From positions 19,716,995-19,780,994 of the forward strand of contig OZ037765.1 in NCBI GenBank assembly GCA_964035545.1: a DNA stretch of 64,000 bases, in the 5' to 3' direction. A program made the position numbers and the translations under genes. Below, in pieces: positions 15,739 to 60,128 of this stretch (positions are counted from its first letter, which is position 1; every line of letters starts with the position of its first letter). The notes under the pieces were generated by a model. It was not told the origin of the DNA. It did no database searches and saw only the letters and a list, made by a program, of their open reading frames with translations. The DNA comes from Bugula neritina. Its lineage: Eukaryota > Animalia > Bryozoa.

Positions 15739-16137
15739 TCACTTTATAATACTTCCATTAAAACCAGGGTAAGAATTTTCTCCGGAAGGCCTTGGCCTTC
15801 TATTTTTACCCTTAGCTTCTGTTACCGAAGCTGCCAGGATAGACATACAATAATTAGATCATTCAACAACATTTTTATAGGCTTTAATGACGTTAGTTAT
15901 GTAATCAACTGCAAATATCATCATTATAACTATTTATACATAGCTTTTGCAAAAGACATATCTAGCAGATTAAAAGTTAATGAGAAAATATATTGCTGTT
16001 TTAATACTCACTGAAAACAAAACTTTTTATTTAAAAAAACACCTTTTTTTCTTCTATATAATATTGAATGTAAGTTTCAACTTACCAAATGCACTGAAGG
16101 CAATCATAGCAATCAAAGCAACAGTAAGAACCTTCAT
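15739..16137 (-). CDS. Small secreted cationic Arg/Pro-rich peptide precursor, copy 1 (47 aa; candidate antimicrobial peptide)
   Basis: Coding exons 16137-16086 (phase 1, GTAAGT donor) and 15830-15739 (CAG acceptor) give MKVLTVALIAMIAFSAFASVTEA-KGKNRRPRPSGENSYPGFNGSIIK*. Upstream acceptor TTTATAG at 16151; AATAAA at 15589-15584. Confidence 0.88.
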
Positions 16138-16794
16138 ATTGAATTTGTATCTATAAATAATCGTTTGTTATATAAGATTTTAATAAAATTGAATGCATAT
16201 AATTAGTGTGTATATTTTAAATATTTTTAAATTAATAATTTGCATACTGTTATATCTTTAAACATTTATTTTAATGTTTAATAGACAGTTTATTATCATA
16301 TCTAATATAAAAGTCCTTTCATAGACAAGTATGGGTTGCTGGGTGTTTAAAATGATTAATTATGAAATTATTATTATCTGAAGTAATATACAGTTCGATA
16401 TATTGTAGCGGGTCTAAAAACACTGCTACCTGCTATGAACCTCTAACTGTACTACAGAGTTCTAACTCAACTAAACCTATTAAACTTTTATTTGAACATT
16501 TTTTCTACCACAAATCTTGTTGAAAGCTTTATTTTCTTAACAATTTTCATGTCCTTATATGAAAAGAAATAAATATTTTATCAGTTTTGTTGATGTCTGA
16601 TTTCCATTTGAATAAGTGAAAAAAAGTTTCAAGTATGCTATTTGTAAAAATAATTTTGTTTTTGAGCAATATGAAGAAGTTAAAAAAAAAATATATATAA
16701 ATTTAACTATTATAAAAAAGGTAATCTATAGGCACATTTGCAAATATAGTCTAATCCTAGGTTCATAAAGTTTTATATTTTGAACAACACATAC

Positions 16795-16875
16795 CTGCGT
16801 CTGGCAATGCTCAGAGGATATAAACACTATTGCAGTGATTGAATACAGCCACAGCCTTAATATATTATTTTATAG
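16795..16875 (-). promoter_or_regulatory. TATA box and short non-coding first exon of peptide gene copy 1
   Basis: TATAAAA at 16874-16868, an initiator-like TTCAATC ~30 nt downstream, and exon end at CAG/GTATGT (16795). Equivalent donors at 33318 and 41975. Confidence 0.6.
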
Positions 16876-17590
16876 ACCATTTTTCAGACTTGAAATGTCA
16901 AGTAGTTGTTAGTTGATTGGTTAATAACTTTCAATAGCGTCTTAGAAACATACAATTATAATGATATGTTTGTTAATAATGATCAAGCCTCTCAACAAAA
17001 ATGATTGATAAATTTTCGGTAACTTGCTATGATAAAACCTTTTTAAGAGAGATAATAAAGCCGCACTAATAATTATATGGGAAACAATTGTGTTAACCAT
17101 TAAACCAGATTTACTATTGGATCAACTGTTTTTATTTTTCTATATCTATTCAATATAGTGGTCTTACAACTGTGCTGTTATGCTAAAGGTTTGACTACAC
17201 ACCAAAATCCAGTATAAAAATCCCAAAATATAGTGCAATAACTATAACGCATTTGCTAACCATGCAACCATGTTCTGATTTAAGTTGTGGCGTTCAAACA
17301 TAATTTAATTTAAAATTCAAAATTGAAATTTTAATTTAAAAACTCAGATAGGCGTTTGTTTTTTTCAAGTAGTCACAATTTAAGAAGTGCGTTTTCAAAT
17401 GTTCTTGTTACCTTAATCACAGCTGTACCATTTTATGCTTCTTGGGGTTAAAGTAGAAAAGTATCAGTCTTATAGTTTTGAAAAAATCATTAATGTATAA
17501 ATGGTTATCTTTTGAATAATGAAGAAACTTGCTTTAAATGTTCATAAAAAAATAATCTTGATTTTTTTTCAGCATTATATAATCTATACG

Positions 17591-17811
17591 GGGAGCAGCC
17601 GTGGTCTAGGGGTTAGAGCGTTTGCCTAGTAAACACAAAGGTCATGGGTTCGAGCCCAGACAAAGGCCATTGGTGATGTTAGGAAGAGCATCCAGTCATA
17701 ATTGCTCCTGTGCCTCATTTAGATAAGTCATTAGCCCGCTTGAACAAAAACCCTTTCTATCAGGGGTTTCTCACAGGGATAGTGACTATAAACTTGCGTG
17801 AGTTTTTTTTT
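17591..17811 (+). mobile_element. tRNA-derived SINE (Thr-AGT-like head), unit-1-specific insertion
   Basis: A box TGGTCTAGGGG, B box GGTTCGAGCC, CTAGTAA anticodon-like loop, T-rich tail, and an imperfect ~17-bp TSD (ATTATATAATCTATACG / ATTATATTATCCATTCG). Site is empty in units 2 and 3. Confidence 0.9.
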
Positions 17812-18174
17812 ATTATATTATCCATTCGATATTTCTGTGAGGTATGTTGTCTGAAAGCCTGAGAAAGAGATTGCCATAAGTACCAATTGTAAATTCAACA
17901 ACAACTTTTGAATCTATACATATATACATGGTTTTGTGAAGAACATAATTTAATAATCAAACAAATATAGAACAGTGAAATATCTGATTGCTGGAAAAAA
18001 GCTAGAAACTCATTACAATGACAATACATAATAGGTTATCAGAGTGTTCAAAGATAAAAGGTGCTTATATAAAAATTTAGAAAAGGGTAAAGAACTAAAA
18101 TTTGCTTGCTAAGTAAGTAAACACATTGTCCAGCAATAAAATACAGCACTATCGAACTAACTACATTTATATAT

Positions 18175-18481
18175 TGTTATGATTTTCAGAATTAGGGTTG
18201 ATATGCTATCCAGAGAGTCTGATTACTTGCTATAGAACTGCACCAGGATAAGTCGAGTGAACGAGTATATATTTTAAACACAATAATACATTACAAAAAC
18301 GATACAAATACATTTGACAATTTCACACATCTAAACTATTCAGCACTCTAACTTCGACTAACTAACAGCGAGAAACTACTACTGCTGCTAACTATCAAAA
18401 CCGCTAATTGGCTATCAATTGTTCCGGGTCAATTACGCGACCCTGTATACTGTGCTGCTGGTAGCTCCACGAGCCACCACA
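18175..18481 (-). repeat. Gypsy 3' LTR
   Basis: Direct repeat of 25370-25676; preceded on the minus strand by a G-rich PPT-like GGTGGGGGCGG. Confidence 0.96.
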
Positions 18482-18769
18482 CCGCCCCCACCAGCAGAAA
18501 GCCCTCTTTCTGATATAAAAAATATTTCTTCATTACCCACATACATCAGTAGACAAAATTGGAAAAAGACAATATATAAGATATACAATAACAGACAGAG
18601 TTATTATAACAGCAGGCTACATACAATTGGCCAGCTATAGAGGAGGAATACCGGCTAGCTGTGGTATTGGACAAAGAGTCGAACTGTCGAGCAGTCGAGC
18701 ATTTACACGATAGTCTTGGGTCTCCCAAGAGGACGAAGTTGTGGATTATTCCGGGCAACAGAACCAGAG

Positions 18770-19551
18770 TCAGTGTTGGGCACGCCGATGTTTGGCTTGG
18801 CATGTACGTAGCTTCCGTTTAATCCGACCCACCGATCCTTTTAGTTGGAAGAGCCCCGTCGTAGTATTAAGCAGATCCGGTGCTAACTGGGTAAATTCCT
18901 CTTGCAGGCGGAGGAGACGTTCCTCTACTGTGGCCAGGCGAGCAGGGTCTGGGGACGGTGTCCGTCTGCGGCGCAGAGGGGGACTGGGAGACCTGGTTCG
19001 ACTCTTCGTCGGGGTAGGGGAGACTTCTCCTTCTTCGGGATAGGAAAACTCTTCGGGGGTGTACGCGATCTGAGGGCGGTCAGATACCAATGGAGATTGT
19101 TGCCTGGCATAGTCTAGTACGCGCTGGAAACCTGAGGTCAGGACGGCTAACAGCATCGCCTTCTTTACTAGGGGTCGTATCAGAGTTAAAAATTCTGGAT
19201 AGAGTTTGGCATCCACCACGTAATTCTCTCCGGAGAAACAGCCCGTCGCTCGATGTCTGGTGACGGGGTAGGGATAGACATCATTGTATCCACAGGGGCA
19301 GAATGTGAGTAAGAGATGGGCGTTGACATGTAGCTTCAAGGAGCGGTGAGAGGCACACTCTTCGTCACAAATCTGGCACCGCGTCCGTCCTCTGGACCCC
19401 CAGGCCGTTTCTATCTGCTCCTCTGTTTCCGGCGACACCCACCGCCAACGGCGGCGCAGTGGCTCGGGCCGGTCACCATTGGCATACTCCTCAGGATGCG
19501 GAGCGGGAAGTGCTCTATCCCGTACCCTGGTTGTAACGGGTCGAGTGTAAT
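18770..19551 (-). CDS. Gypsy accessory ORF3: zinc-finger / RS-P-rich / coiled-coil protein, probably spliced to the first 14 gag codons (274 aa)
   Basis: Intact ORF with no ATG near its 5' end. Motifs CQIC-x12-H-x3-H and CPC-x12-H-x4-C, RSPSPPLRRRRTPSP, and a heptad-like C-terminus. TACTAAC branch point (19577-19571) plus TTTTTCAG acceptor, in phase with a gag donor at 25294. Confidence 0.8.
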
Positions 19552-19865
19552 CTGAAAAAGTTTCAACAGTGTTAGTATAATACACTGCCGTGTTGTCAGC
19601 TTGAACAGCCTGGCAACTTCTCGTTCAGTTACCTCGTAGAGATTTATGGTAGTGAATAGTCAGATAGAACACGTATTGCAATGAGATTATAAAATCTCTA
19701 AGTCAAACTGAGTTCTTACTACGGTAGTTCACTAACCTATCTCCAGCTCAATTGACTCAGTGAGTCGGAGCTGAGCGATGCAATCTAGTTTCCATATTAA
19801 GATATAGTTAACTCACCCCACGATCTGTTGTCGTAAGACATACTTAATTTGTGAAATGGTTTGAA

Positions 19866-22800
19866 CTACTGCTTAGAAACACGTCTACTCTTGACTGCAT
19901 CAGCGTATGAAAAGATTGAGCAACGTGGTTGGGGTGCGTGATTAAGACTTTGTGCACCCGGCGGATGAATTTTGTTTCTATTTCCGCCGATACAAAAGTT
20001 GATATTTTCGTGGTGTTGACAACTCCCACATTTGCTCGATACTTTTCTCGTACGGTTTTCCCCTAGACTTTCATACGCGCCGCTTTTAACGCAGTCGCAT
20101 ACGAAGTCCTTCAAATATGCGGGGGGTTGCCTCGTACGCTGTCCCCTTTCTAGGGGGGGTGACACGCTCGCCGGTTCATTAGCAGGGGCCTCTAATGGCA
20201 TCTCTACTTCACCGTTGGCGGTCACTTCTTCTTGTTCTCCGGATGGAGCCCCTCCCTCCATGGGGTTTTGCACTTCCGGAACCGGCTCGGTTTCTGGAAG
20301 TGATGGAATTAGACTTGGCGGCGGCGGACACGCTTCTGCTGGCAAAAGCTGTCGCTCTTCCCTCGCCAAGTCTTTCTCCCGCGGTATGACCACTTCATAT
20401 TCTGGTCCATGCCGCCGTCGCCCGCGTGTTGTCTGCCTCCTGGGCTCCAACAACGGGGGGGCTTCTCCCACTGCGTTGGGGCTAGCCCAATACGGCTTCA
20501 AGCGAGACTCATTCTGGATAGACACCTGTCCTGAGCGCTCAATCTTGTATGTATGGTTGGGCATAGCCTCGACGATCACGTAGGGTCCCACGAACTTAGG
20601 CTGTAACTTAGCCGCCTGTCCGCGACGCCTACGGTAATTGACCATCCACACCTTATCCCCCGTTTGGTAGAGGGGTGGTTCCTCGGAATCTTCGTGTCGC
20701 ACCTTCCACTGCTGTTCGCGCAGTATATCGTGTGCGGCCTTCATCCGTTCCACTAGTTCGCTGGCATACTCGTGAATCGAGTTGCCTAGCTCTGGAACGT
20801 GGTAGGTGATATGGTCAGGGACACGGGTCTCTCTCCCGAGCATCAAGAGGTTTGGGGTCTCACCAGTACTGGTATGTGGGGTGCTACGGTATGCACGCAT
20901 GACCTGCGGCAACACCGTGTCCCATTCCTCTTGACTGCGTCCAAAGAGGAGACTCCGGAGCGCATCACCTAGCATCCGGTTGTTGCGCTCCACCACCCCA
21001 TTACCTTGTGGGTGATAGGGGGTGGTCCTGCTCTGATTTACTCCCCAGAGGCGGCAAAAGTCGCTCATCAGTTGAGACTGGAATTGAGCGCCTTGATCAG
21101 AGTGTATCTGTTCGGGGAGACCGAAATAGCAGAATACATGTTGGTCTAGTACCCTGGCCACTGTTGGGGCTGACGCATCTGGAATAGCCAGAGCATCCGC
21201 CCACCTAGTAAAGTGGTCGGTCAGTACTAAGACCCAACTATTGCCTCTGGGGGTCAGGGGCATGGGTCCGACCAGGTCAACAGCTACCACTTGCCACGGC
21301 CTGCCAGCATATAGCCTTCGCCGTCCCGCTTCACCAGGGAGACGGCCATGCTTGCTGGCCTGGCAGATTTCGCACTGCTTTACTCTGAGCCGGACATCCC
21401 GCCCCATTTTGGGCCAATACCACCGGAGTTGCAATTTGGAGATCACTCTCTTGACCCCTGCGTGGGCCTGTTTGTGAGTGTCCCAGATTAACTCACGGCG
21501 TATGGCACTGGGGCAGACCACCCTTTTCCTCTCCGGGTGTCTGCCGTTGGCAGCTAGAGAGATGGTCAATAGACCATCCTGCCTGATCCTCAGCGAGTCC
21601 CAACGCTGGCAGAATAGCCGGAACTCGGCGCATCCCTGCCGTATGCATTCCTCGCTGGGTCGTCGCCTGTCCCTTTTGGCTCGATATATGTCTGCCACTA
21701 CCCCAGGCAACTCCTCTTGGAGCTTCTTCAGCTCCTGGACATTATCGGCCAGTACAGGATTGGCGCGGAGGTTCTGTACACCCTCCGGGGACTCGCCAAC
21801 CTCCTGCCTGAGTTGACCCTGGTCCCAGTCAAACGGTGCTCCGTGGTGAGCCAATGTCTCTAACTCGCATCGCGGGGGACCTCCATCCCTCCTCTCGATG
21901 TTGAGACACTGTTTGCAACCTCCATCAGGTCGGCGGCTCAAACCATCCGCATTGCTGTGTCTCTTGCCCGGTCGATGTTCGATCCGGTACGAGAATTCAG
22001 CTAGGATTTCGAGCCACCGGGCGACCTGACTAGAGGGCTCTGCTCTCTTGCACAACCAGATCAGCGAGGCATGATCCGTATGCAGCCGGAACTTCCTGCC
22101 GTATAAGTATGGTCTGAAGTGCTTCACTGACTTGATTACTGCCAGCAGCTCCTTGCGGGTAGTGCAGTAATTTCGTTCAGTGGGTGAGAGAGACTTGCTG
22201 TAGTAGGCTACTACTACCTCTCGGCCTTCCTGCACTTGAGACAGCACAGCGCCAACATTTTGGTCACTGGCGTCAGTGTCGAGGATGTACTCCAGAGTGG
22301 GGTCTGGGTAGGCCAAGATGGGCGCCGTTAGTAGGCAGCCCTTGAGGCGGTCGAACGCTCCTTGTTCGACTGGGGTCCACTGCCACGTCACTCCCTTTGC
22401 GGTGAGCCGGTTTAGCGGCTGTGCTATGCCCGCAAAGTCTGGTATGTATTGCCTGTAATACCCTACCAGCCCCAAGAAAGCCCGAAGTCCGGTCAAGTCT
22501 TGGGGGGTGACCCAGTCTTCTACTGCCCGTACCTTTTCGGGATCCGTTGCCACGCCGTTTCGACCGACAACGTGTCCCAGGTACTTGACCTCCGGCTGCA
22601 ATAGAGCGCACTTGGAAGGTTTGAGCTTAAGACCGGCACCTCGGAGTCTCTCGAAGACCTCCCGCAGACGACTGACGTGCGTCTCGAAGTCTGGGGAGAT
22701 CACGATGACATCATCGAGGTAGATCAGCAGTGTCTTCCAATGGAGCCCGCTGAGGACTTGCTCCATCAGCCTCTGGAAGGTGGCTGGGGCGGAGGTTAAC

Positions 22801-24434
22801 CCGAAGGGCAACACCTTCCACTTCCACAAACCGTCCCGTGTGATAAACGCCGCTTTCTCCTGGGCGTCGGGACTCAGAGGAACTTGCCAATAGCCACTCA
22901 GCAAGTCTAATGTGCTGAAGTACTTGCTGCCGGCTAGGGCGTCCAATGACTCGTCAATACGAGGTAGAGAGTAGGCGTCCTGTATGGTTACGCTATTGAG
23001 TTTGCGGTAATCCACACAGAACCGCCAACTGCCGTCTTTCTTCCGGACCAGTACGACCGGCGAGCTCCACGCACTATGGGCGGGCTCTATGAGGCCGCGG
23101 TCCAGAAGATCTCGTACTTGTCGGCTAACCTCCTTCTCTTTTTCCGGCCCCAGCCTGCGTGTGGGTTGCCGGACAGGGACTGTCCCTGCAGTCAGCGGTA
23201 TTTCGTGTCTGACAACTCCAGTCAGCCCCACGTCATGATCTCCGCTGCTGAACACATCAGCGTAGTCGCGTAGCAACTTCGCCATAGCTTGGCGTTCTTT
23301 GTTGCTCGCGCAGCCGCCACAGGCTGTGTCATACAACTCCCGGAGATGTGCTGGGACTGTCCCTCGCCTTTGCGTAGGGCACCGAGGGAATGCCTCCGTC
23401 GCATCACCCAGCGACGGGCCCACGTCCTCCTCTTGAACAGAGTGAAAACGGCCCAGCATAGACCCAGCCGGAAGCTTGACAGACTCGGTAAAGGGGTTGA
23501 CGCACTGCACTAAGATCTCCCCTTGCTCAGTCAGCTGATTCAGACTGCTGGCAAGTTGGATCCTTTCGTGCGCGCCTTCAACTACCCCGAGTCCAGAGAT
23601 CCGGCTATTGTTCACCCTGCAGTGAATGGTAGCCCGGGAGCGGCCTGGTATGGTACAGTTGCGTACCACCTGCACACCTCTCACTAAAGGGCGGCCGAAC
23701 TTGTCGACGCAGGCGAGTTCTCGCCCGGACATCACCATCGCAGATTTACTAAAATCGATGTGACATCCGTGCCGTTTTAGGAATGGCATCCCGAGGATGG
23801 CGTCCTCCTTGAGCTGACTGACGATAAACGTCTCTTGGATCGTTTGATCATGGACTCATCCCGTCAGCTCAATTATACCATAGAAGGGAAGGCATGACCC
23901 GTCAGCTAGGGTGCCATACTCCCCCTCGTATGGTTCCATCTCGCCCCTGACCCTAGCACTGAGGGTGTCGAAAAGTTGGCGGCTTAAGAGGTTCGTGGTA
24001 CAGCCCGAATCAATGAGGAAAGTAACAGCTTTGCCCTCCAGTTTACCGGGCAAGAAATAGCTGTTCCCATGGGGCTGTACCTGAACTCTCTCTTCAGGCC
24101 TTACTCTCGCAGGGAGTACCTCCCTCGCTTTGGGTCGCGAAGGAGGTCTCTTGGGATGGTGGTAAGTGGGCCTCGGAGGTGCCGAGGCTAGATTTCCGGC
24201 TACCTTTGTTGGCTCCCATCCAGATTCTTGGGCTGGTAGCCCTTCGAATCGATTGTGGAGGGGCATGGAAAAGGTAGCGGCGGGGCGGATCCCCTTGCTG
24301 GTCCGTCGCGGCTGTTGCCACTGTTGGTTGCCAGTACGCGGTACCCGTCTGGGTGACCTGTGTTTCTTCTTCTCTGGAGGTTTCATCGTCGGCCCGCAGG
24401 AGGTGGGAACATCTGCGGGCCGCGGTAGTTTAAC
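19866..24434 (-). CDS. pol: Gypsy Pol polyprotein (protease-RT-RNase H-integrase), interrupted by one in-frame TGA at 23858-23856
   Basis: Protease LIDSG; RT LPFGL..AP and YLDD; RNase H TDAS; integrase HHCC, DDE (DLVGP, HSDQG, ERNNR) and GPY motif. ORFs 23856..24494 and 19866..23789 are in the same frame. Confidence 0.95.
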
Positions 24435-25336
24435 CCCGGAGTTAGGAAGGGACAGTACCTGCGAAAATGTCCTTGATTTCCGCATTCCCAGCAAAAACTG
24501 ACCGTTTCCCCCGGTGGCGGCGCCGGTGGCCGTACGGGCTCAGCGGCGGTACCTACTGGGGTTTGGGGTGTCAGTGTTGCTATCAGTTTGGCCAGCATGT
24601 CTGTCAGTTGAGTGACTTTCGATGCTGTCGCTAACTGAGCCACAGCAGCCGTGGCGGAGGTTTCCTCCTCTCGTCCCGCTGCCGTGTCCGCGCGGTCTAC
24701 CTCCACTTGACGGGAGCTCCCGCGACTTTTATGCATTTGATTTGCTAGGAGGTAAGCTTTCCCCTCTGTAAGAGCATCCTCAACGGTGGTGACTCCCCTA
24801 GCTAAAAACTGGTGGTGGAGACCCAGATCGTCGACAGATGCTATGAAAGCGTCGAGGGTATACCTCTCGCGGTTGACTGGGGGCAAGTCGCTGTATGCGA
24901 TCTGTGCCAGCTTCATGACCGCGGCGGCATGTTCCCGCAACGGGGTGCGGGGATCACGCCGCAACCTCTGCAATCGGGCCCGGGCATCTGTAGCAGAGAG
25001 GCCGAAGCGGGCCCGCAGAGAAGCAAAGATATTATCGATGTCTACGCCCAGCCCATAAGGCTTGGCTTTGTCCATCAATGCCATTCTAAGCTTCAGCAGG
25101 GCCACCCTAGGGGGCCACTGGGCGACGTCCATTGCGTCGCTAAACTCTTGGATGAATTGCTCCACCTCCTCTTCGCCCGTGAAGGTGGGCGCCTTTAACC
25201 GGTAGCGGTCTTCAGTTAGTTCTCGCGGAACCCTTCGCTCTTCTACTACATGGTTAACAGGCATTGTCTCTACAGCATTGTCTCTAGGCTCACCTTCTAC
25301 TCCCGGTGGTTGCATTCCAGCATTTTCAGTCTCCAT
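24383..25336 (-). CDS. gag: Gypsy Gag (317 aa)
   Basis: Begins just after the PBS; capsid-like PTFTGEEEVEQFIQEF and CCHC knuckle CWECGNQGHFRRYC. Confidence 0.93.
   Translation of the reverse strand: METENAGMQPPGVEGEPRDNAVETMPVNHVVEERRVPRELTEDRYRLKAPTFTGEEEVEQFIQEFSDAMDVAQWPPRVALLKLRMALMDKAKPYGLGVDIDNIFASLRARFGLSATDARARLQRLRRDPRTPLREHAAAVMKLAQIAYSDLPPVNRERYTLDAFIASVDDLGLHHQFLARGVTTVEDALTEGKAYLLANQMHKSRGSSRQVEVDRADTAAGREEETSATAAVAQLATASKVTQLTDMLAKLIATLTPQTPVGTAAEPVRPPAPPPGETVSFCWECGNQGHFRRYCPFLTPGLNYRGPQMFPPPAGRR
24390..24434 (-). promoter_or_regulatory. Candidate -1 ribosomal frameshift signal (gag-pol)
   Basis: G_TTA_AAC in the gag frame, a 5-nt spacer, then a perfect 10-bp GC-rich stem CGGCCCGCAG/CTGCGGGCCG with a 13-nt loop. 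pol is in the -1 frame. Confidence 0.75.
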
Positions 25337-25350
25337 CTTGGATGTGCACT

Positions 25351-25368
25351 ATCCCACTGCTGCCACCA
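25351..25368 (-). promoter_or_regulatory. Primer binding site, tRNA-Leu type
   Basis: TGGTGGCAGCAGTGGGAT lies 1 nt from the 5' LTR and is complementary to a tRNA-Leu-like 3' end (ATCCCAC.GCTGCCACCA). Confidence 0.85.
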
Positions 25369-25369
25369 C

Positions 25370-25676
25370 TGTTATGATTTTCAGAATTAGGGTTGATATG
25401 CTATCCAGAGAGTCTGATTACTTGCTATAGAACTGCACCAGGATAAGTCGAGTGAACGAGTATATATTTTAAACACAATAATACATTACAAAAACGATAC
25501 AAATACATTTGACAATTTCACACATCTAAACTATTCAGCACTCTAACTTCAACTAACTAACAGCGGGAAACTACTACTGCTGCTAACTATCAAAACCGCT
25601 AATTGGCTATCAATTGTTCTGGGTCAATTACGCGACCCTGTATACTGTGCTGCTGGTAGCTCCACGAGCCACCACA
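25370..25676 (-). repeat. Gypsy 5' LTR
   Basis: Direct repeat of 18175-18481, followed on the minus strand by the PBS. Confidence 0.96.
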
Positions 25677-26795
25677 ATATTGCATTAAAAAGCAATTCTT
25701 ATTTTGATAAAAAGATTCAAAACAAATAGTACAGATGGCGTTATACACATTGGGTATTAATTTTTAGCAAGATACCATGTTAATTAATTTTCTTTTGGGT
25801 TATGCAGAACAACAATCATTATGATAAAAGCAGGATTAGGCTAAATTTTATTAATGCAAGATATATAATACTGTATGTTTCAATTAACAGGCAGTGAACT
25901 TAATGTCAGACATTGACATGGGCATCTTATAGTTTTGATTTATTTTGAAGATTAAAAACTTATCTGTATTTTTATTGTTAATAGTTATCTATATTCTGTC
26001 TCCTGGAAATATCTAACGCTAAGAAAATACATTGTCCATGAACTGAAACATGTCATAATTATATACTAACATCGTCACACTTGGTAGAGTTGCAATAATA
26101 AGTATCCTGGTTATTGATAATCTCTTATATGATATATAGTGTATTGCTTAAGAGCTGTGGGTTTGATTACATCACTTCCTCTAGACATTATAAAAGTCTG
26201 TACTGATTGTAAGTTGCATATTTGACGCAAATTTTGTTTAGCTGCATCACTCTTTATGTCTCAAGAAAGTCCAATTAACTGCCTGCCATTCATAAGCCAT
26301 CTTCAACTAAAACAAGTAGCATTTTATATATATAAAGTAAAGAACCGAAAGCTTCACTTTGATTTTCATCCTTGGTTTCAAGATTTTGAATTTTTTGATT
26401 GTTATTATCAAACCATATTTTTCGTAAAATTACTTTGATTTTCATTCTTTTAATCTTTGTCTTCAGGATTTTGAACTCTTTCTCTCCCCTTTTGTGATTG
26501 ATAATAATTGATTATTTCGAGTGTGAATTGTGTTATGCAGTTTAATTTTTATTTGTGTTCTCTACAACAATAGCAACGTTGTTGTTCGTTGAAAAATTAT
26601 AGTGAAAGTTTAGTGAACAGAGAGTTGGCACTGTGAGTACCTTTGGCCGTTTTGAACCAGTTGTTTAATTGATATCAGTCCCAAGTGTACGGAGTGAACA
26701 TACCTAATTATTAAATTTTTGTTGTTTTTTTTTCTTTCCTTTTTTGTTGATCACTAAACTTTCAATTATTTGTCAGGATACTGAAAAAATATAAC

Positions 26796-27695
26796 ATGCC
26801 TGGAGGAGCTAATAATAACAATAATGATAGTTCCTGTGGTGGTTGCAAGAGGAACATCAAAGGAGAATCAATCCAATGCAATGTTTGCACTCTGTGGTTT
26901 GATATTAAATGTTCAGATGTGGATAGTGCCACTGCAATTTTTTTGAAATCTCTTTCTGGCGAAAAGAGTTCAGTTCACTGGAACTGTTCCTCTTGTGAAA
27001 GTAGTTCAAAAAGGTTGCATGATATGATTGGTGCTGTTAATAACAGAGTGGCGCAGGTAGAATGTAAGATCAATGAGTTGAAACACTCTGTCACTTCCCT
27101 TGACACTACAGTTGAACATAGGATGGAAAGCGTAAGCCAGGATATAGACCATGCAGTGGCATCTATAAAAGCTGATTTTGATGTAGCTGTTGAAAACCAC
27201 AACAAAAAAATAGAGTGTGTTATGCAAGCTCGCCCCACCAATCTGGAGGAACACACCCGACTTGGGTCCAACTCCAGAAACAATAGAGCTAGTGAATCAG
27301 TTGTGACTCAGGTTGCTGGTGAGCTTAGAGAAAGACAAAAGCGAGCGTTAAATGTAGTATTCTCCGGAGAAGTAGTCAAAGACAAGATAACAAAGTTTTT
27401 AGAAGTAGCGAAGGTTGATCCTGCAACTAAAGTGCTTGAGATCACTACTAAACACAAAAAGATTATCTATATTGTCACGATGGACCAGGAAAAAGATAAA
27501 TGGACTGTAATTAGGAAAGCACGATCTATTAGCCTATCTACTGAGGGCTTGAAAAATATTTTTGTAAATCCTGATCTTATAAAAACTGAGCGAGAGGCAC
27601 AGTACTTGCTGAGACAGGAATTGAAAAGAAGGCGCCATGCAGTTAGGTGAAAGTGTTAAAATCAGTAAAGGAAAAGTTATTGAGGTTAGAAGTTA
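26796..27695 (+). pseudogene. LINE ORF1 (PHD finger, coiled coil), frameshifted near the C-terminus
   Basis: CGGC...CNVC.LWFD.KC...WNCSSC PHD-like motif; ERQKRALNVVFSG and IFVNPDL motifs typical of CR1/L2-group ORF1. Confidence 0.85.
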
Positions 27696-27746
27696 GAACG
27701 AGCAGAGGGAGACTAGACGGTGGAGAAAAACCTTACATTTAAACAA

Positions 27747-30462: not shown

Positions 30463-30665
30463 GCTAGAGTGTTGGTTTTTAAATATTTTTACTTACATTT
30501 TACTACGAAACCCTATAACTAAAGAAAAATAAAATAAAATAAATGAACGATCTAATATAAAAAAAGAGTATATACGTATTATATGCATATATTATGTATA
30601 TGCATATATCGAGTTTCCATGCATTCACCCTCCAAAGGTTCTTAGTGGGAAACTCTCCCAAACTG

Positions 30666-30777
30666 AAAGGATCTTCTAGCTTCTTGTGTTGCCAATAGCT
30701 CATGCACCCCTTAGCTTTTTAAAAAGTATATCGACTATGGAAAAGATGAAGATAATAGAAATAGCACTAAACTGTAA
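30666..30777 (+). pseudogene. Orphan SLC5 exon-14 fragment (unit 2)
   Basis: KDLLASCVANSSCTP* copy of 14132-14243 with a premature TAG. Its 5' stub is at 26336-26354. Confidence 0.85.
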
Positions 30778-32257
30778 AATATCTAATTGCTTCAAGTTAT
30801 TGCTTAGTATATATTATTCATGTTGTCTGAATGTCGATATATTTATACTCATGTATACTAATTTATTTGTCTACACGAATTTGCAAGCTTTTAAAGAGAT
30901 ACATGAGCATTGGGGGCAGCTGGTAGCTGATGATTATATTATTAATCAAAATTCCACTGCATAGCTCATTGAAACAATTCTACTTACCCATATTGAATCT
31001 ATATACAACATATATATTACATTATTACTCTATCGTAAAATGTTCTGTTGCTGGGCATTTAGAGACAATAAGAAATGCATATATTGTTACTACTCAAAAC
31101 GAGGCCACTAAAAATTGAAAATATAAATTCTACTTCGATTTCAGTTTGATTCATTTACAAGCATTAAGAACTTTATGAATGACACCCACAATTGCACACA
31201 ATACTGTTATATAATATTGGGAGAACCATGAGTCACAATTAAAAGAGCAGATAACCCTAAATACTAAGACATGTAAGGGTGTATGAATAATTGTAGTATT
31301 TTTTGTAGTGTACTTTGCTTAGTCACTATTGCTATTAGAAACATTTGGTCTTGTAGATTGAGTTACCAAAAACACTAGAGATTGTAATTACACTTTCAGT
31401 TTAATTGTAATATATCTAAAGTTTATGTATTACATTATAGCCAGTCTATTTAACTAAATGGCACAGTATCTGTAATTTCTCCATAAATCAGGGTGTAAAA
31501 TATGCTATATTCTATGCTTATATATTTTACATATAAGCATGCTAGATACCATAGCCATAAGATGCTGAGACTATTTTCTGCTATAGTGCTTTCAAATTTC
31601 TACGAGTAGCCTACTGGCCAGGTTTCATAAATAAGTGAATTCAGTTTTTGTCAATTAAGTAGCCTTGGCGAGCTTATTTCTCAAAGCAATGCACCTTGGC
31701 AGCCAAAAGCATTTCGTATAGGGATATAATGCGCAAAATCAATCAAGTGAGGCATATATGACTTTCACCTTGCATTGTTTACAGGCATTGGCATTTTTCA
31801 TATAGCATTAGGTTGTAACTAGAAACTATTTTTGTAACCATATTAGTCTTGTTATTCCAAGTTTTATCAGGTGATTTCCAAAAACATGTATTCTTATATT
31901 AAAAAAAGGCGAACATTAATATTGTGACAAGTGTATAGCTTCTACCAGCTATTGAGTAAGACCTACAGTTACTCTTACAACTAGGGAATTCGAAAGCCCA
32001 CTTAATTATTATTTATTAACATATGTACTCCTTTAATAGACATTTTGCTATTACATGTTACTTAATTAAAACAAGAAGCTTTAATTAACTAAATACAGTT
32101 GTTTTATTCTTGCGAATGAATAGAAATCACACAAAATATTTAGAAACTGAAATTATCCTCACATATCAAGTTGAGAGAAATACGTTAATTGTTCAGAGAA
32201 TCATCAAAACGGTCGTGTCCAGGTCAATGGTTGGCATGCAGCTAAGCATTTTGGTTG

Positions 32258-32656
32258 TTACTTTATAATACTTCCATTAAAACCAGGGTAAGAATTTTCT
32301 CCGGAAGGCCTTGGCCTTCTATTTTTACCCTTAGCTTCTGTTACCGAAGCTGCCAGGATAGACATACAATAATTAGATCATTCAACAACATTTTTATAGG
32401 CTTTAATGACGTTAGTTATGTAATCAACTGCAAATATCATCATTATAACTATTTATACATAGTTTTTTGCAAAAGACATAGCTAGCAAATTAAAAGTTAA
32501 TGAGAAAATATACTGCTGTTTTAATACTCACTGAAAACAAAACTTTTAATTTAAAAAAACACCTTTTTTCTTCTAAATAATATTGAATGTAAGTTTCAAC
32601 TTACCAAATGCACTGAAGGCAATCATAGCAATCAAAGCAACGGCAAGAATCTTCAT
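32258..32656 (-). CDS. Secreted cationic peptide precursor, copy 2 (47 aa)
   Basis: Exons 32656-32605 and 32349-32258 give MKILAVALIAMIAFSAFASVTEA-KGKNRRPRPSGENSYPGFNGSIIK*. Splice sites, TATA (33397-33391) and AATAAA are retained. Confidence 0.88.
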
Positions 32657-35081
32657 ATTGAATTTGTATCTATAAATAATCGTTTGTTATATAAGATTTT
32701 AATAAAATTAAATGCATATAATTAGTGTGTATATTTTAAATATTTTTAAATTAATAATTTGCATAGTATTATATCTTTAAACATTTATTTTAATGTTAAA
32801 TAGACAATTTATTACCATTTATAAATTTTTCAATAACTGGTTTTGATATAAAAATAATTTTATAGACAAGTATGGGTTGCTGGGCGTTTAAAATGATTAA
32901 TTATGAAATTATTATTATCTGAATTAATATACAGTTCGATATATTGTAGCTACCTAGCTGCTATGAACTTCTAACTGTACTACAGAGTTCTAACTCAACT
33001 AAACCTATTAAACTTTTATTTGACCATTTTCTACTGCAAATCTTGTTGAAAGCTTTATTTTTTTGAACAATTTTCATGTCCTTATATGAAAAGAAATAAA
33101 CCTTTATCAGTTTTGTTGATGTCTGATTTCCGTTTGAATAAGTGAAAAAAGATTCAAGTGTGCAATTTATAAAGATAATTTTGTTTTTGAGCAATAAAAA
33201 GAATAAGAAAAAAATATATATAAATTTAATTATTATAAAAACGTTAATCTATAGGCACATTTGCAAATATATTCAAATCCTAGGTTCATGAAGTTTTATA
33301 ATATGTTGAACACATACCTGCGTCTGACAATGCTCAGAGGATATGAACACTATTGTAGTAATTGAATACAGCCACAGTCTTTATATATTATTTTATAGAC
33401 CATTTTTCAGACTTGAAGTGTCAAGTAGTTGTTAATTGATTGGCTAATAACTTTCAATAACGTCTTAGAAACATACAATGATAATGATATGTTTGTTAAT
33501 AATGATCAAGCCTCTCAACAGAAATGATTGATAAATTTTCAGTAACCTGCTATGATAAAACCTTTTTTAAGAGAGATAACAAAGCAGCACTAATAATTAT
33601 ATGGGAAACAATTGTGTTAAACATTAAACTAGGAATTTACTATTGGATCAACTGTTTTTATTTTTCTATATCTATTCAATATAGTGGTCTTACAACTGTG
33701 CTGTTATGCTAAAGGTTTGACTACACACCAAAATCCAGTATAAAAATCCCAAAATATAGTGCAATAACTATAATGCATTTGCTAACCATGCAGCCATGTT
33801 CTGATTTAAGTTGTGGTGTTCAAACATAATTTAATTTAAAAAACTGAGATGGGTGTTCGTTTTTTCCAGTAGTCACAATTTAAGAAGTGCGTTTTCAAAT
33901 GTTCTTGTTACCTTAATTACAGCTGTAGCATTTTATGGTTCTTGGAGTTAAAGTGGAAAAGTACTTTTCCACTTTAACGTATCAGTCTTATAATTTTGAA
34001 AAAATCATTAATGTATAAATGGTTATCTTTAGAATAATAAATAAACTTCTTCAAATGTTCATAGAAAAATTGTCTTGATTATTTCTTCAATATTATATTA
34101 TCCATACGGTATTTCTGTGAAGTACAATGTTGTTTGAACGTGAAAAAGTGATTGCCATAAGTACCAATTGTAAATTAAACAAAAACTTTTGAATCTATAC
34201 ATAAATACATGGTTGTGGGAAGTACATAATTTAATAATCAAACAAATATAGAACAGGAAAATATTTGATTGCTGGAATAAAGCTAAAAAAACTCATTACA
34301 ATGACAAAACATAATAGGTTATCAGAGTGTAAAAAAATTTAGAAAAAGGTAAAAAACTAAAATATGCTTGCTAAGTAAGTAAACACATTGTCCAGCAATA
34401 AATTACAGCACTATCTAACTAACTACATTTATATATTGCATTACAAATATTTCCTTATTTTGATAAAAAGATTCAAAACAAATAGCAAAGACGGCGTTAT
34501 ACACATTGGGTATTAATTTTTAGGTCAGTAGGCATGTTATTAGCAAGATACCATGTTAATTAATTTTCTTTTGGGTTATGCAGAACAACAATCATTATGA
34601 TAAAAGTAGGATTAGACTAAATTTTATTAATGCAAGATATATAATACTGTATGTTTCAATTAACAGGCAGTGAACTTAATGTCAGACATTGACATAGGCA
34701 TCTCATAGTTTTGATTTATTTTGAAGATTAAAAACTTATCTGTATTTTTATTGTTAATAGTTATTTATATTCTGTCTCCTGGAAATATCTAACGCTAAGA
34801 AAATACATTGTCCATAAACTGAAACATATCATAATTATATACTAACATCGTCACACTTGGTAGAGTTGCAACAATAAAGAACTGTGGGTTTGATTACATC
34901 ACTTCCTCTAGACATTATAAAAGTCTGTACTGATTGTAAGTTGCATATTTGACGCACATTTTGTTTAGCTGCATCACTCTTTATGTCTCAAAAAAGTCCA
35001 ATTAACTGCCTGCCATTCATAAGCCATCTTCAACTAAAACAAGTAGCATTTTATATATATAAAGTAAAGAATCGAAAGTTT

Positions 35082-38000
35082 CACTTTGATTTTCATCTTT
35101 GGTTTCAAGATTTTGAATTTTTTGATTGTTATTATCATACCATATTTTTCGTAAAATTACTTTGATTTTCATTCTTTTAATCTTTGTCTTCAGGATTTTG
35201 TACTCTTTCTCTCCCTTTTTGTGATTAATAATAATTGATTATTTCGAGTGTGAATTGTGTTACGCATTTTAATTTTTATTTGTGTTCTCTACAACAATAG
35301 CAACGTTGTTGTTTGTTGAAAAATCATAGTGAAAGTTTAGTGAACAGAGAGTTGGCACTGTGAGGACCTTTGGCCATTTTGAGCCAGTTGTTTAATTGAT
35401 ATCAGTCCCAAGTGTACGGAGTGAACATACCTATTAATTAAATTTTTGTTGTTTTTTTTTCTTTCCTTTTTTGTTGATCACTAAACTTTCAATTATTTGT
35501 CAGGATACTGAAAAAATATAACATGCCTGGAGGAGTTAATAATAATAATAATGATAGCTCCTGTGGTGGTTGCAAGAGGACCATCAAAGGAGAATCAATC
35601 CAATGCAATGTTTGCACTCTGTGGTTTGATATTAAATGTTCAGGTGTGGATAGTGCCACTGCAATTTTTTTGAAATCTCTTTCTGGCGAAAAGAGTTCGG
35701 TTCACTGGAACTGTTCCTCTTGTGAAAGTAGTTCAGAAAGGTTGCATGATATGATTAGTGCTGTTAATAACAGCGTAAGCCAGGATATAGACCATGCAGT
35801 GGCATCTATAAAAGCTGATTTTGATGTATCTGTTGAAAACCTCAACAAAAAAATAGAGTGTGTTATGCAAGCTCGCCCCACCAATCTGGAGGAACACACC
35901 CGACTTGGGTCCAACTCCAGAAACGATGGTTATCCCAATAGAGCTAGTGAATCAGTTGTGACTCAGGTTGCTGGTGAGCTTAGAGAAAGACAAAAGCGAG
36001 CCTTAAATATAGTATTCTCCGGAGAAGTAGTCAAAGACAAGATAACAAAGTTTTTAGAAGTAGCGAAGGTTGATCCTGCAACTAAAGTGCTTGAGATCAC
36101 TACTAAACACAAAAAGAATATCTATATTGTCACGATGGCCCAAGAAAAGGATAAATGGACTCTAATTGGGAAAGCACGATCTATTAGCTTATCTACTGAG
36201 GGCTTAAAAAAATATTTATGTAAATCCTGATCTTACAAAAACTGAGCGAGATGCACAATACTTGCTGAGACAGGAATTGAAAAGAAGGCGCCAGTTAGGT
36301 GAAAGTGTTAAAATCAGTAAAGGAAAAGTTATTGAGGTTAGAAGTTAGAACAAGCAGAGTGATACTAGACGGGGAGAAAAACCTTACATGTAAACAATGC
36401 AAATAAAAATGAATCTAGTTTCAAATTATGTTACTTAAATATACGATCACTTAGAAATAAAGTCACAGATTTAGAATTGGCGATTCAACAACACTCTAAC
36501 ATAGCTCTTATCTGTTTAACAGAAACTTTTCTTAGCCTTGATATCAGTTCAGGAGAGCTGTCTTTACCTGGATATAATATTTTTCGTAAAGACAGAAACA
36601 TAGCTAGAGGGGCGTTGCTGCCTATGTCCAATCAAAGTACAATGTTGATAAAATTCCTATAACATCTCGAGCTGAATGCTTATTTCTAAAGATAGCTCCA
36701 GGTAGAGAAGTTCTCTTTATCTTGTTGGTCTATCGACCACCAAATAATATGGACATAAATTTAATACCTGACCTACTTGACGAAATAAACAAAACTGTGC
36801 ATAATTCAGAGAGCAAACTACTAATATGTGGTGACTTCAATCTCCTAAAGATTGACTGACACAACTATAGAGCTACGGGCTTTTTTAAAATCACTAAACC
36901 CTTTTTAGCTAAAATTTCTGAACTTTACTTAGAACAACACATATACACACCTACTCATATCCATGGAAATACTTTAGACCTGCTTCTTACTAACAAATCA
37001 ATAATTAAAAACATCTCACTAATAGATCCACACCTCAGTGATCATAATATGATTCTGGCCACTTTAGAAATTAATCTCGATGCCAATTCTCCTCATATAA
37101 CCAAAATTATTCACTTATATAATCAAACAGACTTTACTAACGCTCCAAAGATCTCACCAAAAATATGAAAACAAGATTAGCATTGTAATAAAACATAAAT
37201 CAAACATTAATGATATCTACAATTTATTTCTGAGCTGCATAAAGGAACTTCGATTCACTTGTGTTCCTACAAAAACTGTTTGTGAGACTAAACATTCACC
37301 ATGGCTTAATAAAAACTTAAAAAAAGATTTATCAAAACAAAAAACACTTTACAACAAAATGAAATGGTGTCCTACTGAATATAACATACTTCGATTCCAA
37401 AAACAAGAAAAACCAACAAAAAACTTATTAAATTAGCTAAAAAGTCTTATCTAAACAGGATGTTATATAAACCACTGCAAAGTGGTAATAGCAAACCATT
37501 TTTTATATATATGAGAAAAATGAATGAAAACACTAAAAATACAATACCAGAACTAAAATATAATAATAAAGTAGCCAAAAGTGCTCAAGATAAAGCCAAT
37601 ACCTCAAATGAATTTTTTGAGTTCGTGTTCACACATGACGATGGTAAGACAGTGAAACTGCCACAAAAATTTTCTGTAGATAATAGTGAAATAATAATAA
37701 ATGAATGAGGTGTTGAAGAATTATTAATAAAAATTGATTCGAGCAAATCCTGTGGACCTGATAATGTAAGTGGAATATTACTAAAAACCTTTACCACTTA
37801 TATAAGTGGTCATCTTACCAAGATATTCCAATATTCCATCAAAACAAACTCGATTCCAGATATCTGGAGAGTCGCCAATATTACACCAGTTCACAAAAAA
37901 GGAGACAGACATATTCCCAATAATCACCGACCAATATCTCTTACATGTATCCCTTGTAAACTTATAGAACACATCCTAGTGAGAGAGATAAATGCTCATT

Positions 38001-39309
38001 TAGAAAAACATAATATACTTACACCAGTACAACATGGTTTTAGAAAACATAGGTCCTGTGAAACTCAGTTGGCGTATACCGCTAATGAGTTGTCTTTAAA
38101 TATAGAACATGGTAGTATAACTGATCTTGTTGTTTTGGATTTTAGTAAGACCTTTGATTCCGTTAACCATAGAAAGTTGTTACAAAAGTTATCAATGTAT
38201 GGTATAAATTGCTTAATCTATTTATGGATTGAACAATTTTTGTCCTTTCGAAAGCAGTTTGTAATTGTGGACAATTCACCATCTAACGAGGTAAAAGTGA
38301 TATCTGGTGTACCTTAAGGGTCGGTCCTGGGGCCTTTGCTCTTTCTTATCAACGACTTACCACTAGGTATCGACTCGCAGATCCGATTGTTTGCAGATGA
38401 TGCATTGCTTTTCAATGTCAGAAAAAATAAAAATCAGCTACAACAAGATCTAAACACCGTGGAGAAATAGTCCCATACCTGGCAGATGTGCTTTAATGCA
38501 GCCAAATGCTCAGTTATATCAGTTGGTAAAAAAAATTCTGATATAATATATACTTTGAATAATACCAGATTAAGTAACGTATAATCACATTCATATTTAG
38601 GTATTGAATTTAGTTATGACATGAAGTGGTCCAATCATATAAATAAAATAATAACCAATGCCTATAAAAACCTGGGAATGATAAAAAGAGTACTAAAATC
38701 TGCAGACACAAAAACTAAGCTTGTTGCATATTACAGTTTAGTGAGGTCAAAGTTGGAATATGGTTGTCAGGTGTGGGATCCTGTTTTGAAAAAAGATATT
38801 AAAATTATTGAAAAAGTTCAAAATAAAGCATTGCGTTTTATTTTTTCTATAAGATCACAAGTAAGCTACAGTAATCTGCGAGAAGCCACGGGAATTAAAT
38901 CTATGAAAGACCGTCAAAAAGAATTGCGGCAAAAACTATTTTTCAAACGTATAGAAAATAATTTAATAAATCAAGGATATGTCGCTCCACGACCTCCAAT
39001 TAATACCAGACAACACTCGAAGCTTTTCTTGCCTGCAATATCTTCAAAAGTATATTTTCACTCTTTTTATCCTCGAACTACTAGAGAGTTGAGAGATGGA
39101 ATTTAGGCTAGAGTGTTGGTTTTTAAATATTTTTACTTACATTTTACTACGAAACCCTATAACTAAAGAAAAATAAAATAAAATAAATGAACGATCTAAT
39201 ATAAAAAAAGAGTATATACGTATTATATGCATATATTATGTATATGCATATATCGAGTTCCCATGCATTCACCCTCCAAAGGTTTTTAGTGGGAAACTCT
39301 CCCAAACTG
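35082..39309 (+). mobile_element. CR1/L2-group LINE, copy 2 (segmentally duplicated, more decayed)
   Basis: Same insertion junctions and shared lesions as copy 1. ORF1 from 35523 has an in-frame deletion and a frameshift; ORF2 is broken by several extra stops. Confidence 0.93.
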
Positions 39310-39421
39310 AAAGGATCTTCTAGCTTCTTGTGTTGTCAATAGCTCATGCACCCCACAGCTTTTTAAAAAGTATATCGACTATGGAAAAGATGAAGATGAT
39401 AGAAATAGCACTAAACTGTAA
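39310..39421 (+). pseudogene. Orphan SLC5 exon-14 fragment (unit 3)
   Basis: KDLLASCVVNSSCTPQLFKKYIDYGKDEDDRNSTKL* directly after the LINE 3' end. Confidence 0.85.
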
Positions 39422-40903
39422 AACATCTAATTGCTTCAAGTTATTGCTTAGTATATATTATTCATGTTGTCTGAATGTGGATATATTTATACTCATGTAT
39501 ACTAATTTATTTGTCTACACGAATTTGCAAGCTTTTAAAGAGATACATGAGCATTGGGGGTAGCTGGTATAGCTGATGATTATATTATTAATCAAAATTC
39601 CACTGCATAACTTATTGAAAAAATTATACTTACCCATATTGAATCTATATACAACATATATATTACATTATTACTCTATCGTAAAATGTGCTGTTGCTTG
39701 TATTTAGAGACAATAAGAAATGCATATATTGTTACTACTCAAAACGAGGCCAGTAAAAATTGAAAATATAAATTCTACTTCAATTTCAGTTTGATTCATT
39801 TACAAGAACTTTATGAATGGCACACACAATTGCACACAATACTGTTATATAATATTGGGAGAACCAGGAGTCACAATTAAAAGAGCAGATAACCCTGAAT
39901 ACTAAGACATGTAAGGGTGTATGAATAATTGTAGTGTTTTTTGTAGTGTACTTTGCTTAGTCACTATTGCTATTAGAAACATTTGGTCTTGTAGATTGAG
40001 TTACCAAAAACACTAGAGATTGTAATTACACTTTCAGTTGAATTGTAATATATCTAAAGTTTATGTATTACATTATAGCCAGTCTATTTAACTAAATGGC
40101 ACAGTATCTGTAATTTCTCCATAAATCAGGGTGTAAAATATGCTATATTCTATGCTTATATATTTTACATATAAGCATGCTAGATACCATAGCCATAAGA
40201 TGCTGAGACTATTTTCTGCTATAGTGCTTTCAAATTTCTACGAGTAGCCTACTGGCCAGGTTTCATAAATAAGTGAATTCAGTTTTTGTCAATTAAGTAG
40301 CCTTGGCGAGCTTATTTCTCAAAGCAATGCACCTTGGCAGCCAAAAGCATTTCGTATAGGGATATAATGCGCAAAATCAATCAAGTGAGGCATATATGAC
40401 TTTCACCTTGCATTGTTTACAGGCATTGGCATTTTTCATATAGCATTAGGTTGTAACTAGAAACTATTTTTGTAATCATATTAGTCTTGTTATTCCAAGT
40501 TTTATCAGGTGATTTCCAAAAACATGTATTCTTATATTAAAAAAAGGCGAACACTAATATTGTGACAAGTGTATAGCTTCTACCAGCTATTGAGTAAGAC
40601 CTACAGTTACTCTTACAACTATAGGGAATTCGAAAGCCCATTTAATTATTATTTATTAACATATGTACTCCTTTATTGGATTTTTTTGCTATTACATGTT
40701 ATACTTAATTAAAACAAGAAGCTTCAATTAACTATATAAATACAGTTGTTTTATTCTTGCGAGTGAATAGAAATCACACAAAATATTTAGAAACTGAAAT
40801 TATCTTCAAGTATCAAGTTGAAAGAAATACGTTAATTGTTCAGAGAATCATCAAAACGGTCTGTCCAGGTCAATGGTTGGCATGCAGCTAAGCATCTTAG
40901 TTG

Positions 40904-41302
40904 TTACTTTTTAATACTTCTATTCCAAACAGGGTAAGAAATTTCTCTGGGAGGCCTTGGCCTTCTATTTCTAATGATAGCTCCTGTTACCGAAGCTGCC
41001 AGGATAGACATACAATAATTAGATCATTCAACAACATTTTTATAGGCTTTAATGACGTTAGTTATGTAATCAACTGCAAATATCATCATTATAACTATTT
41101 ATACATAGTTTTTTGCAAAAGACATAGCTAGCAAATTAAAAGTTAATGAGAAAATATACTGCTGTTTTAATACTCACTGAAAACAAAACTTTTAATTTAA
41201 AAAAACACTTTTTTTCTTCTATATAATATTGAATATAAGTTTCAACTTACCAAATGCACTGAAGGCAATCATAGCAATGAAAGCAATGGCAAGAACCTTC
41301 AT
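40904..41302 (-). CDS. Secreted cationic peptide precursor, copy 3, divergent mature peptide (47 aa)
   Basis: Exons 41302-41251 and 40995-40904 give MKVLAIAFIAMIAFSAFASVTGA-IIRNRRPRPPREISYPVWNRSIKK*. Frame, length and splice sites are conserved. Confidence 0.88.

Positions 41303-43705: not shown

Positions 43706-43707
<2 letters not shown>

Positions 43708-43763
<56 letters not shown>
43708..43763. repeat. (TA)n microsatellite at the end of unit 3
   Basis: Perfect TA run; short remnants sit at the ends of units 1 and 2. Confidence 0.97.

Positions 43764-43766
<3 letters not shown>

Positions 43767-46316: not shown

Positions 46317-60128
<13,812 letters not shown>

Follow-up and report, generated by a model that had tools for sequence, protein, structure and literature searches.

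Families of secreted effectors, among them antimicrobial peptides (AMPs) and venom peptides, carry a recognizable signature in which a conserved signal peptide precedes a hypervariable mature peptide, the genes are duplicated in tandem, and pseudogenes occur among them. Myticalins and Cg-Prp, linear cationic AMPs of marine molluscs, are short, secreted, cysteine-free peptides containing arginine and proline, encoded by lineage-restricted multigene families in the AT-rich genomes of marine invertebrates. Here we describe a set of short, spliced, gene-like copies in a 64,000-nucleotide stretch of the bryozoan Bugula neritina (contig OZ037765.1, positions 19,716,995 to 19,780,994 of the forward strand; hereafter the window). 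The intact copies are probably real genes for secreted cationic peptides, and a host-defence role is the reading of them that we tentatively favour.

The locus resembles the superfamilies of conotoxins and frog-skin AMPs and the AMP clusters of molluscs and arthropods. Like these, it has a phase-1 intron directly after the signal exon, strong conservation of both that exon and the intron, mainly nonsynonymous change in the mature peptide, a tandem array, and a pseudogene. Unlike them, it has neither a propeptide region nor a cysteine framework, its predicted precursor is far shorter (~47 residues), and the window holds two distinct, putatively functional alleles. The anionic C-terminal or N-terminal extension of myticalin and Cg-Prp precursors, which we compare by general description only, is absent here. 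Lineage-restricted, fast-evolving tandem families of small, cationic, secreted peptides are a familiar kind of system, but we found no record of this particular family in the resources searched.

A further point of comparison is the proline-rich AMPs (PrAMPs), which are defined by a proline content of at least 25% (mean 34%) and a net charge of at least +1, with antimicrobial activity and an intracellular target, either the 70S ribosome or DnaK, as essential features (Welch et al., 2020, Box 1; PMC7736402). In the same definition a PRP motif is indicative but not essential, and most named PrAMPs contain one to several of them (PMC7736402).

Anatomy of the three intact copies

Each intact copy lies on the minus strand and presents the same series of elements: a TATA-like box, a candidate leader exon, a signal-like exon, a phase-1 intron, a mature-peptide exon, and an AATAAA signal (Table 1). 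The original prediction had described exactly this anatomy, and we found all three copies at the coordinates it gave, with the junctions 16795/16150 and 16086/15830 on GT..AG boundaries. The candidate first exon is ~50 nt long, GC-richer, and terminates in CAG|GTATGT; intron 1, of 644 nt, terminates in TTATTTATAG. Exon 2 spans 65-66 nt, with 13-14 nt between the acceptor and the ATG, and its coding part comprises 17 codons plus one base before the donor G|GTAAGT. Its product would read M-K followed by 15 uncharged, mostly hydrophobic residues (grand average of hydropathicity, GRAVY, 2.1-2.3). Intron 2 is 255 nt long and in phase 1, with a CTAAT branch-point-like site ~27 nt before the proposed acceptor. 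In exon 3, two bases finish the split codon and are followed by 29 codons and a stop. Copies 1-3 agree in where this stop lies, although it reads TGA in copy 1 and TAA in the other two, and AATAAA follows ~150 nt downstream. In copy 1, exon 1 is 45% GC, exon 2 is 34%, and the coding part of exon 3 is 39%, with 23-25% in the introns. We infer transcription and splicing of these models from the signals just listed.

Among the AG sites of intron 2, the proposed acceptor of exon 3 leaves the longest frame open, and its pyrimidine tract ranks with the best; from stop to stop, the frame around exon 3 extends for at most 39 residues. We also considered an unspliced 35-residue product starting from an ATG inside intron 2, and judged it less likely, as it would have no signal peptide and almost no 5' untranslated region (UTR).

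The exon-3 products of copies 1 and 2 are identical, and the mature peptide predicted for copy 3 is divergent and more basic. The exon-2 product has the features of a classical eukaryotic signal peptide: a basic n-region, a hydrophobic h-region (7-15 residues in such peptides), and a c-region with small residues at -3 and -1. Read by eye from exon 2 into exon 3, two positions fit the -3/-1 rule, one after residue 18 (A-F-A|S) and one after residue 23 (T-E-A|K, with T-G-A|I as the copy 3 equivalent), so the cleavage site is ambiguous, and the secreted peptide may have 29 residues (+4 or +7) or 24 residues (+5 or +7). When we recomputed the net charges of +5 and +7, the T-E-A/T-G-A motif, and the N-x-S sequon of the original prediction, all proved correct.

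The peptides are strongly basic and hydrophilic (GRAVY -1.4 to -1.6), with 3-4 proline and 0-4 glycine residues in the 24-mers. Their helical hydrophobic moments at 100 degrees are 0.16 and 0.10, values that do not describe a lytic amphipathic helix of the cecropin or magainin type. The products of copies 1-3 have no cysteine and hence none of the paired cysteines of defensin-like or knottin peptides. The sole R-R lies inside the core and is followed by proline, and the peptides end in I-I-K or I-K-K without a preceding glycine. With neither flanking convertase sites nor an amidation signal, the precursor is not a typical neuropeptide precursor.

Table 1. Coordinates of the peptide gene copies and of the tandem units around them. 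Copies 1-3 lie on the minus strand, copy 4 on the plus strand. Gene models were read from the sequence and their exons translated; units were placed by self-BLAST, with sliding-window divergence for the two complete ones (those of copies 2 and 3).
Feature	Copy 1	Copy 2	Copy 3	Copy 4
Gene model	15584..16874	32103..33397	40750..42057	44255..44725 (inverted, old pseudogene)
TATA box	16868-16874 (TATAAAA)	33391-33397 (TATAAAA)	42051-42057 (TATAAGA)	
Candidate non-coding exon 1 (inferred)	about 16845-16795	end 33318	end 41975	
Intron 1	16794-16151			
Exon 2	16150-16086	32669-32605	41316-41251	
ATG	16137	32656	41302	44268
Intron 2, phase 1	16085-15831			
Exon 3, coding part	15830-15739	32349-32258	40995-40904	44548-44616 (exon-3-like frame)
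Mature-peptide codons (24), hypervariable	15742-15813	32261-32332	40907-40978	
End of stop codon	15739	32258	40904	
28-nt 3'UTR motif	15657-15684	32176-32203	40823-40850	44698-44725
AATAAA, end of 3'UTR	15589-15584	32108-32103	40755-40750	
Tandem unit	14132-18176, resuming 25677-27049	27129-35013	35772-43692	
Near-invariant downstream block	14874-15388	about 31362-31861	about 40010-40510	

Duplication history and divergence of the copies

Self-BLAST placed the peptide gene copies within ~8.65-kb tandem units, each of which also contains a remnant of a long interspersed nuclear element (LINE). Two units are complete and 94% identical to each other; the third, with copy 1, is interrupted by a short interspersed nuclear element (SINE)-like insertion at 17590-17806 and by a 7.5-kb long terminal repeat (LTR) retrotransposon at 18175-25676. 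Because copies 1-3 belong to such units, they are not independent observations. Only at copies 1-3 does the window have a start with a basic residue whose open frame runs on through a hydrophobic core of 13 residues to a GTRAGT donor. Composition-preserving shuffles of the window gave an expectation of 0.02, but since the three loci are duplicates they amount to a single independent event. Frames that stay open for 29-39 codons are commonplace here and carry no weight alone.

The stronger argument for a gene lies in how the copies differ from each other. In a three-way alignment, the 72 nucleotides of the presumed mature peptide are the same in copies 1 and 2, and copy 3 has 13 differences that fall in 10 codons. 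Every one of them is nonsynonymous (Nei-Gojobori Nd 13, Sd 0; pN 0.229, pS 0), an outcome with a neutral probability of 0.044. Between the same copies, divergence is 1.2-2.8% in intron 2, 4-5% in the 3'UTR, 6-8.5% in intron 1, and 4-5.5% in the rest of the unit, and the pN of 0.229 significantly exceeds each of three proxies: 0.028 for intron 2 (Fisher p = 2e-6), 0.085 for intron 1 (p = 1.6e-3), and 0.055 for the rest of the unit (p = 1.3e-5). Four of the changes create arginine or lysine, taking the net charge from +5 to +7; the N-R-R-P-R-P core, S-Y-P, and N-x-S-I are unchanged between the variants. Substitutions in the signal exon are all hydrophobic-for-hydrophobic (V/I, T/A, L/F). The coding parts of copies 1-3 contain no indels or stops, and intron 1 shows 12-48 gap columns per copy pair.

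Intron 2 is far better conserved than intron 1 (1-3% versus 6-8.5%), at 15819-15943 and 16011-16083 in copy 1. Its first ~100 nt are also ~95% identical in copy 4 (44294-44370), although copy 4 is otherwise 32% diverged. This conservation could reflect a conversion tract or a functional intronic element.

The window contains four copies only. The original prediction had counted the three intact members correctly but had missed the fourth, which is inverted and broken. In self-comparison, copy 4 belongs to a stretch at 44188-45141 (+) that is about 68% identical and much older than copies 1-3. It retains the acceptor and the ATG, but its signal exon has lost 28 nt, which shifts the frame into a stop at 44298-44300, and its donor GT is now AT. 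Exon 1, a promoter, and a canonical AATAAA are missing, and copy 4 is a pseudogene. Its exon-3-like frame is open in the same phase and would encode an unrelated 22-residue basic tail with one cysteine. Compared with copy 3, it is 93-95% identical across the 5'UTR, the beginning of the signal exon, and the opening ~100 nt of intron 2, and ~65% elsewhere. A motif at the 5' end of intron 2 is common to copy 4 and copies 1-3, as is a 28-nt motif in the 3'UTR, for which we found four matches, one per copy, with none expected. These observations are most likely explained by a lineage-restricted, tandemly duplicated family under birth-and-death evolution, with three apparently intact members and one dead.

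A ~515-nt block downstream of the genes is nearly invariant in all three units. It lies 200-700 nt past the poly(A) signal and contains one substitution and one 11-bp indel, the longest identical run being 352 nt; elsewhere the units differ by 4-6%. The block has no Rfam match, no folding signal on either strand, and no consistent open reading frame (ORF). It may reflect recent gene conversion or constraint, for example on an enhancer. We rejected a 43-residue ORF inside it as non-coding, as the 11-bp indel between copies falls within that ORF. Rfam at gathering thresholds returned nothing across the whole window, and a sub-threshold match resembling a small nucleolar RNA, from a relaxed scan of 14600-17000, was also rejected.

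A proposed host-defence role and the competing explanations

Taken together, these features suggest the following scheme. The three-exon gene would give a secretory precursor of about 47 residues, whose N-terminal signal peptide would direct the product into the endoplasmic reticulum; as the precursor is so short, translocation would probably be post-translational. Signal peptidase would release a cysteine-free basic peptide of 24 or 29 residues (+4 to +7), rich in arginine, glycine, and proline and without an amphipathic helix, built on a conserved core, N-R-R-P-R-P...S-Y-P...N-x-S-I. Between copies, the mature peptide diversifies by amino-acid-changing substitutions that add charge, and its signal exon, the intron next to that exon, and the 3'UTR stay alike. 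The peptide would most likely act outside the producing cell as a host-defence effector working through its charge. Because the peptide is not amphipathic, a non-lytic or intracellular action is likelier than pore formation. A lineage-restricted family of secreted peptides of this host-defence, or antimicrobial, type is the most likely single reading, though we put it at somewhat less than an even chance. Of the lineage-specific host-defence family originally proposed, the short, spliced, duplicated, signal-bearing, cationic part held up; its antimicrobial role stays a proposal.

Several points weigh against this reading. Proline makes up 12.5% of the 24-mer that copies 1 and 2 share and 16.7% of that of copy 3 (10.3% and 13.8% of the 29-mers), below the 25% of PrAMPs. 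The signal-cleavage site is ambiguous, as described above. Exon 1 is a candidate, and a spliced leader joined at the exon-2 acceptor by trans-splicing could take its place. Other AG sites in intron 2 would start the last exon at 16010, 15961, or 15908, although in phase 1 these would close the frame after 9-15 codons. The selection signal comes from a comparison of two distinct alleles, and the differences might instead have arrived together in a conversion tract donated by a paralogue outside our view; several of the 13 are adjacent multi-base changes. Even then, the donor paralogue would have had to keep the frame. No kappaB-like site was found upstream of any copy, which is a weak test. Fast, charge-raising change of the mature peptide fits toxins or reproductive peptides equally well.

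Searches for relatives were blank as well. A profile of the three 39-residue genomic frames gave one spurious match, to a repeat protein, among 1.84 billion protein representatives. Nothing was found in metagenome contigs with protein patterns (drawn partly from intron-derived residues) or with an exact scan for the 28-nt 3'UTR motif, and exact look-ups of the 35-residue genomic ORFs found nothing on record. The exon-3 products hit no Pfam family at E up to 10 and nothing at E up to 10 in the PDB, and a full-text literature search with the peptide strings returned no related paper. PDB chains of fewer than 20 residues are under-represented, as are very short proteins in general. These blanks are weak evidence, since gene callers seldom report proteins of such small size and the collections seemingly lack the source genome. 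They do agree with the original view that the family is not a named one.

The original prediction had likened the peptides to PrAMPs. Their charges of +5 and +7 and the presence of exactly one PRP motif per peptide agree with that label, but the proline content does not, and no AMP family was matched; given the proline content, the peptides should not be filed as PrAMPs. Like oncocin, Bac7, and PR-39, they are linear, cysteine-free, strongly cationic, and non-amphipathic and contain a PRP motif, and a length of 24 residues is within the range of insect PrAMPs. They differ from PrAMPs in having a single PRP motif instead of repeats and in showing no detectable homology. In the copy 3 peptide, residues 6-11 are R-P-R-P-P-R, a hexamer also present in oncocin derivatives (PMC11678341), whereas copies 1 and 2 read R-P-R-P-S-G, without the P-P-R part. 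We treat this hexamer as a lead only. It is conceivable, but improbable, that the copies represent a new animal family of non-lytic antimicrobials that, with far less proline than any accepted PrAMP, pass into bacterial cells and obstruct the exit tunnel of the ribosome by means of a minimal R-P-R-P(-P-R) core; in that case, copy 3 would be a variant recently evolved toward the oncocin/Bac7 core. Were this so, the sequence space of translation-inhibiting host peptides would be widened.

How probable is it that there is no functional gene at all, and that chance features of an AT-rich segment were simply copied three times, with the copy 3 differences as a mutational or conversion patch? The three duplicates amount to one observation, frames of this length are common in the window, external relatives were not found in the searches made, and the adjacent multi-base changes suggest templated conversion. 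A signal-like start with a consensus donor would, however, be expected only 0.02 times per window, and chance does not readily give 13 nonsynonymous changes of 13 without a stop or indel; their excess over the intron rates has a p value of at most 1e-3. The neighbouring intron hardly varies, GC content sets the exons apart, the stop position, AATAAA, and 3'UTR motif are retained, and the copy 4 frame is open in the same phase. We therefore consider this explanation doubtful, though not negligible.

If the product is real and secreted, it might instead be a signalling peptide, such as a hormone, a pheromone, or a gamete-recognition or reproductive peptide. The gene-model evidence applies equally to this explanation, reproductive and recognition peptides are likewise fast-evolving and tandemly duplicated, a conserved core with variable flanks could mean receptor binding, and the kept N-x-S sequon would suit a glycosylated ligand. 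But the precursor has no flanking dibasic sites, no C-terminal glycine for amidation, and one peptide copy, and a gain of two charges through four arginine or lysine changes is seen more typically in effectors directed at microbes or membranes; on balance a signalling role is unlikely. A role as a toxin, as part of saliva or venom, or as part of an adhesive or cement, aimed at other animals or at surfaces, would account for the tandem duplication, the conserved signal exon and intron, the hypervariable mature peptide, and the birth-and-death pattern, which are typical of venom families, and the closest relative of the LINE in the units comes from a marine-biofilm metagenome, a weak hint of a sessile or fouling marine animal. 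Most peptide toxins, however, have a cysteine scaffold or an amphipathic helix, neither of which is found in the intact copies, and no toxin family was matched in Pfam or the PDB, so we rate this possibility as quite unlikely.

If expressed, the host-defence-type family that we favour would be an unannotated, taxonomically restricted group of very small secreted effectors. It was found by reading through splice sites, which shows that ORF and gene callers miss precursors of ~47 residues. The copies also form a natural experiment, with near-identical introns around a mature peptide that carries 13 amino-acid-changing substitutions and two added charges. The two natural variants could be compared directly for activity, such 24-mers being cheap to synthesise, and peptides active inside bacteria would be of interest as leads.

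Other elements in the window

The window is 30% GC except for one GC-rich insertion and has GT-AG introns, TATA boxes, AATAAA signals, and the mobile elements described below, features that mark it as part of an AT-rich animal genome. The insertion is the Ty3/gypsy LTR retrotransposon that interrupts the copy 1 unit, with about 56% GC within surroundings of 30%. The two LTRs, 18175-18481 and 25370-25676, share 99% identity and are bounded by TG..CA, and a 4-bp ATAT target-site duplication, together with empty sites in the other two units, proves the insertion. The insertion is young, and its GC contrast with the host is striking and unexplained. The element has a gag-like frame of 317 residues, a protease frame of 212 residues, and a pol frame of 1307 residues (reverse transcriptase, RNase H, and integrase), followed by an extra 271-residue ORF without a Pfam match. 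The best relative of the pol is 73% identical and lies in a metagenome contig; the pol itself is not on record.

The LINE remnants within the tandem units lie at 26796-30432 and 35523-39106 and are CR1-like. Their ORF1, with a PHD-type zinc finger, has 284 residues in one remnant (26796-27650) and 235 residues in the other. The reverse transcriptase ORF (28399-30432) is 677 residues long in the unit of copy 2 and fragmented in that of copy 3, and the open frame lacks the endonuclease part present in relatives of about 900 residues. Its best relatives, 53-56% identical, are in metagenome or Logan contigs, the closest in the marine-biofilm metagenome mentioned above.

A SINE-like repeat of ~215 bp occurs in four copies that are 79-87% identical (5853-6070, 17590-17806, 45287-45501, and 59639-59822). 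The repeats carry a box-B-like motif, GGTTCGAACC, and ARAGORN did not predict a tRNA in any of them. The repeat at 17590 inserted in the copy 1 unit alone among the three units.

At 59937-60128 (+) we noted an unspliced 63-codon ORF that begins M-K-I-L, continues with a hydrophobic segment of ~15 residues, and is followed by AATAAA ~20 nt past the stop. It has no Pfam match and may be another gene for a small secreted or membrane peptide, or a chance frame. A second segmental duplication, 1-2983 and 11659-14457, is 81-88% identical and reaches as far as the downstream flank of the unit with copy 1. Within it, two plus-strand ORFs, 825-1142 (105 residues) and 12484-12846 (120 residues), share an identical stretch of ~60 residues, over which the DNA differs by 2-3%, versus 6-10% nearby; this stretch may be an exon of some gene. 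A (TA)n run at 43706-43765 marks the junction of the copy 3 unit and the inverted copy 4, and a (TG)n microsatellite of ~630 bp (47187-47821) is listed as Cys-Val ORFs.

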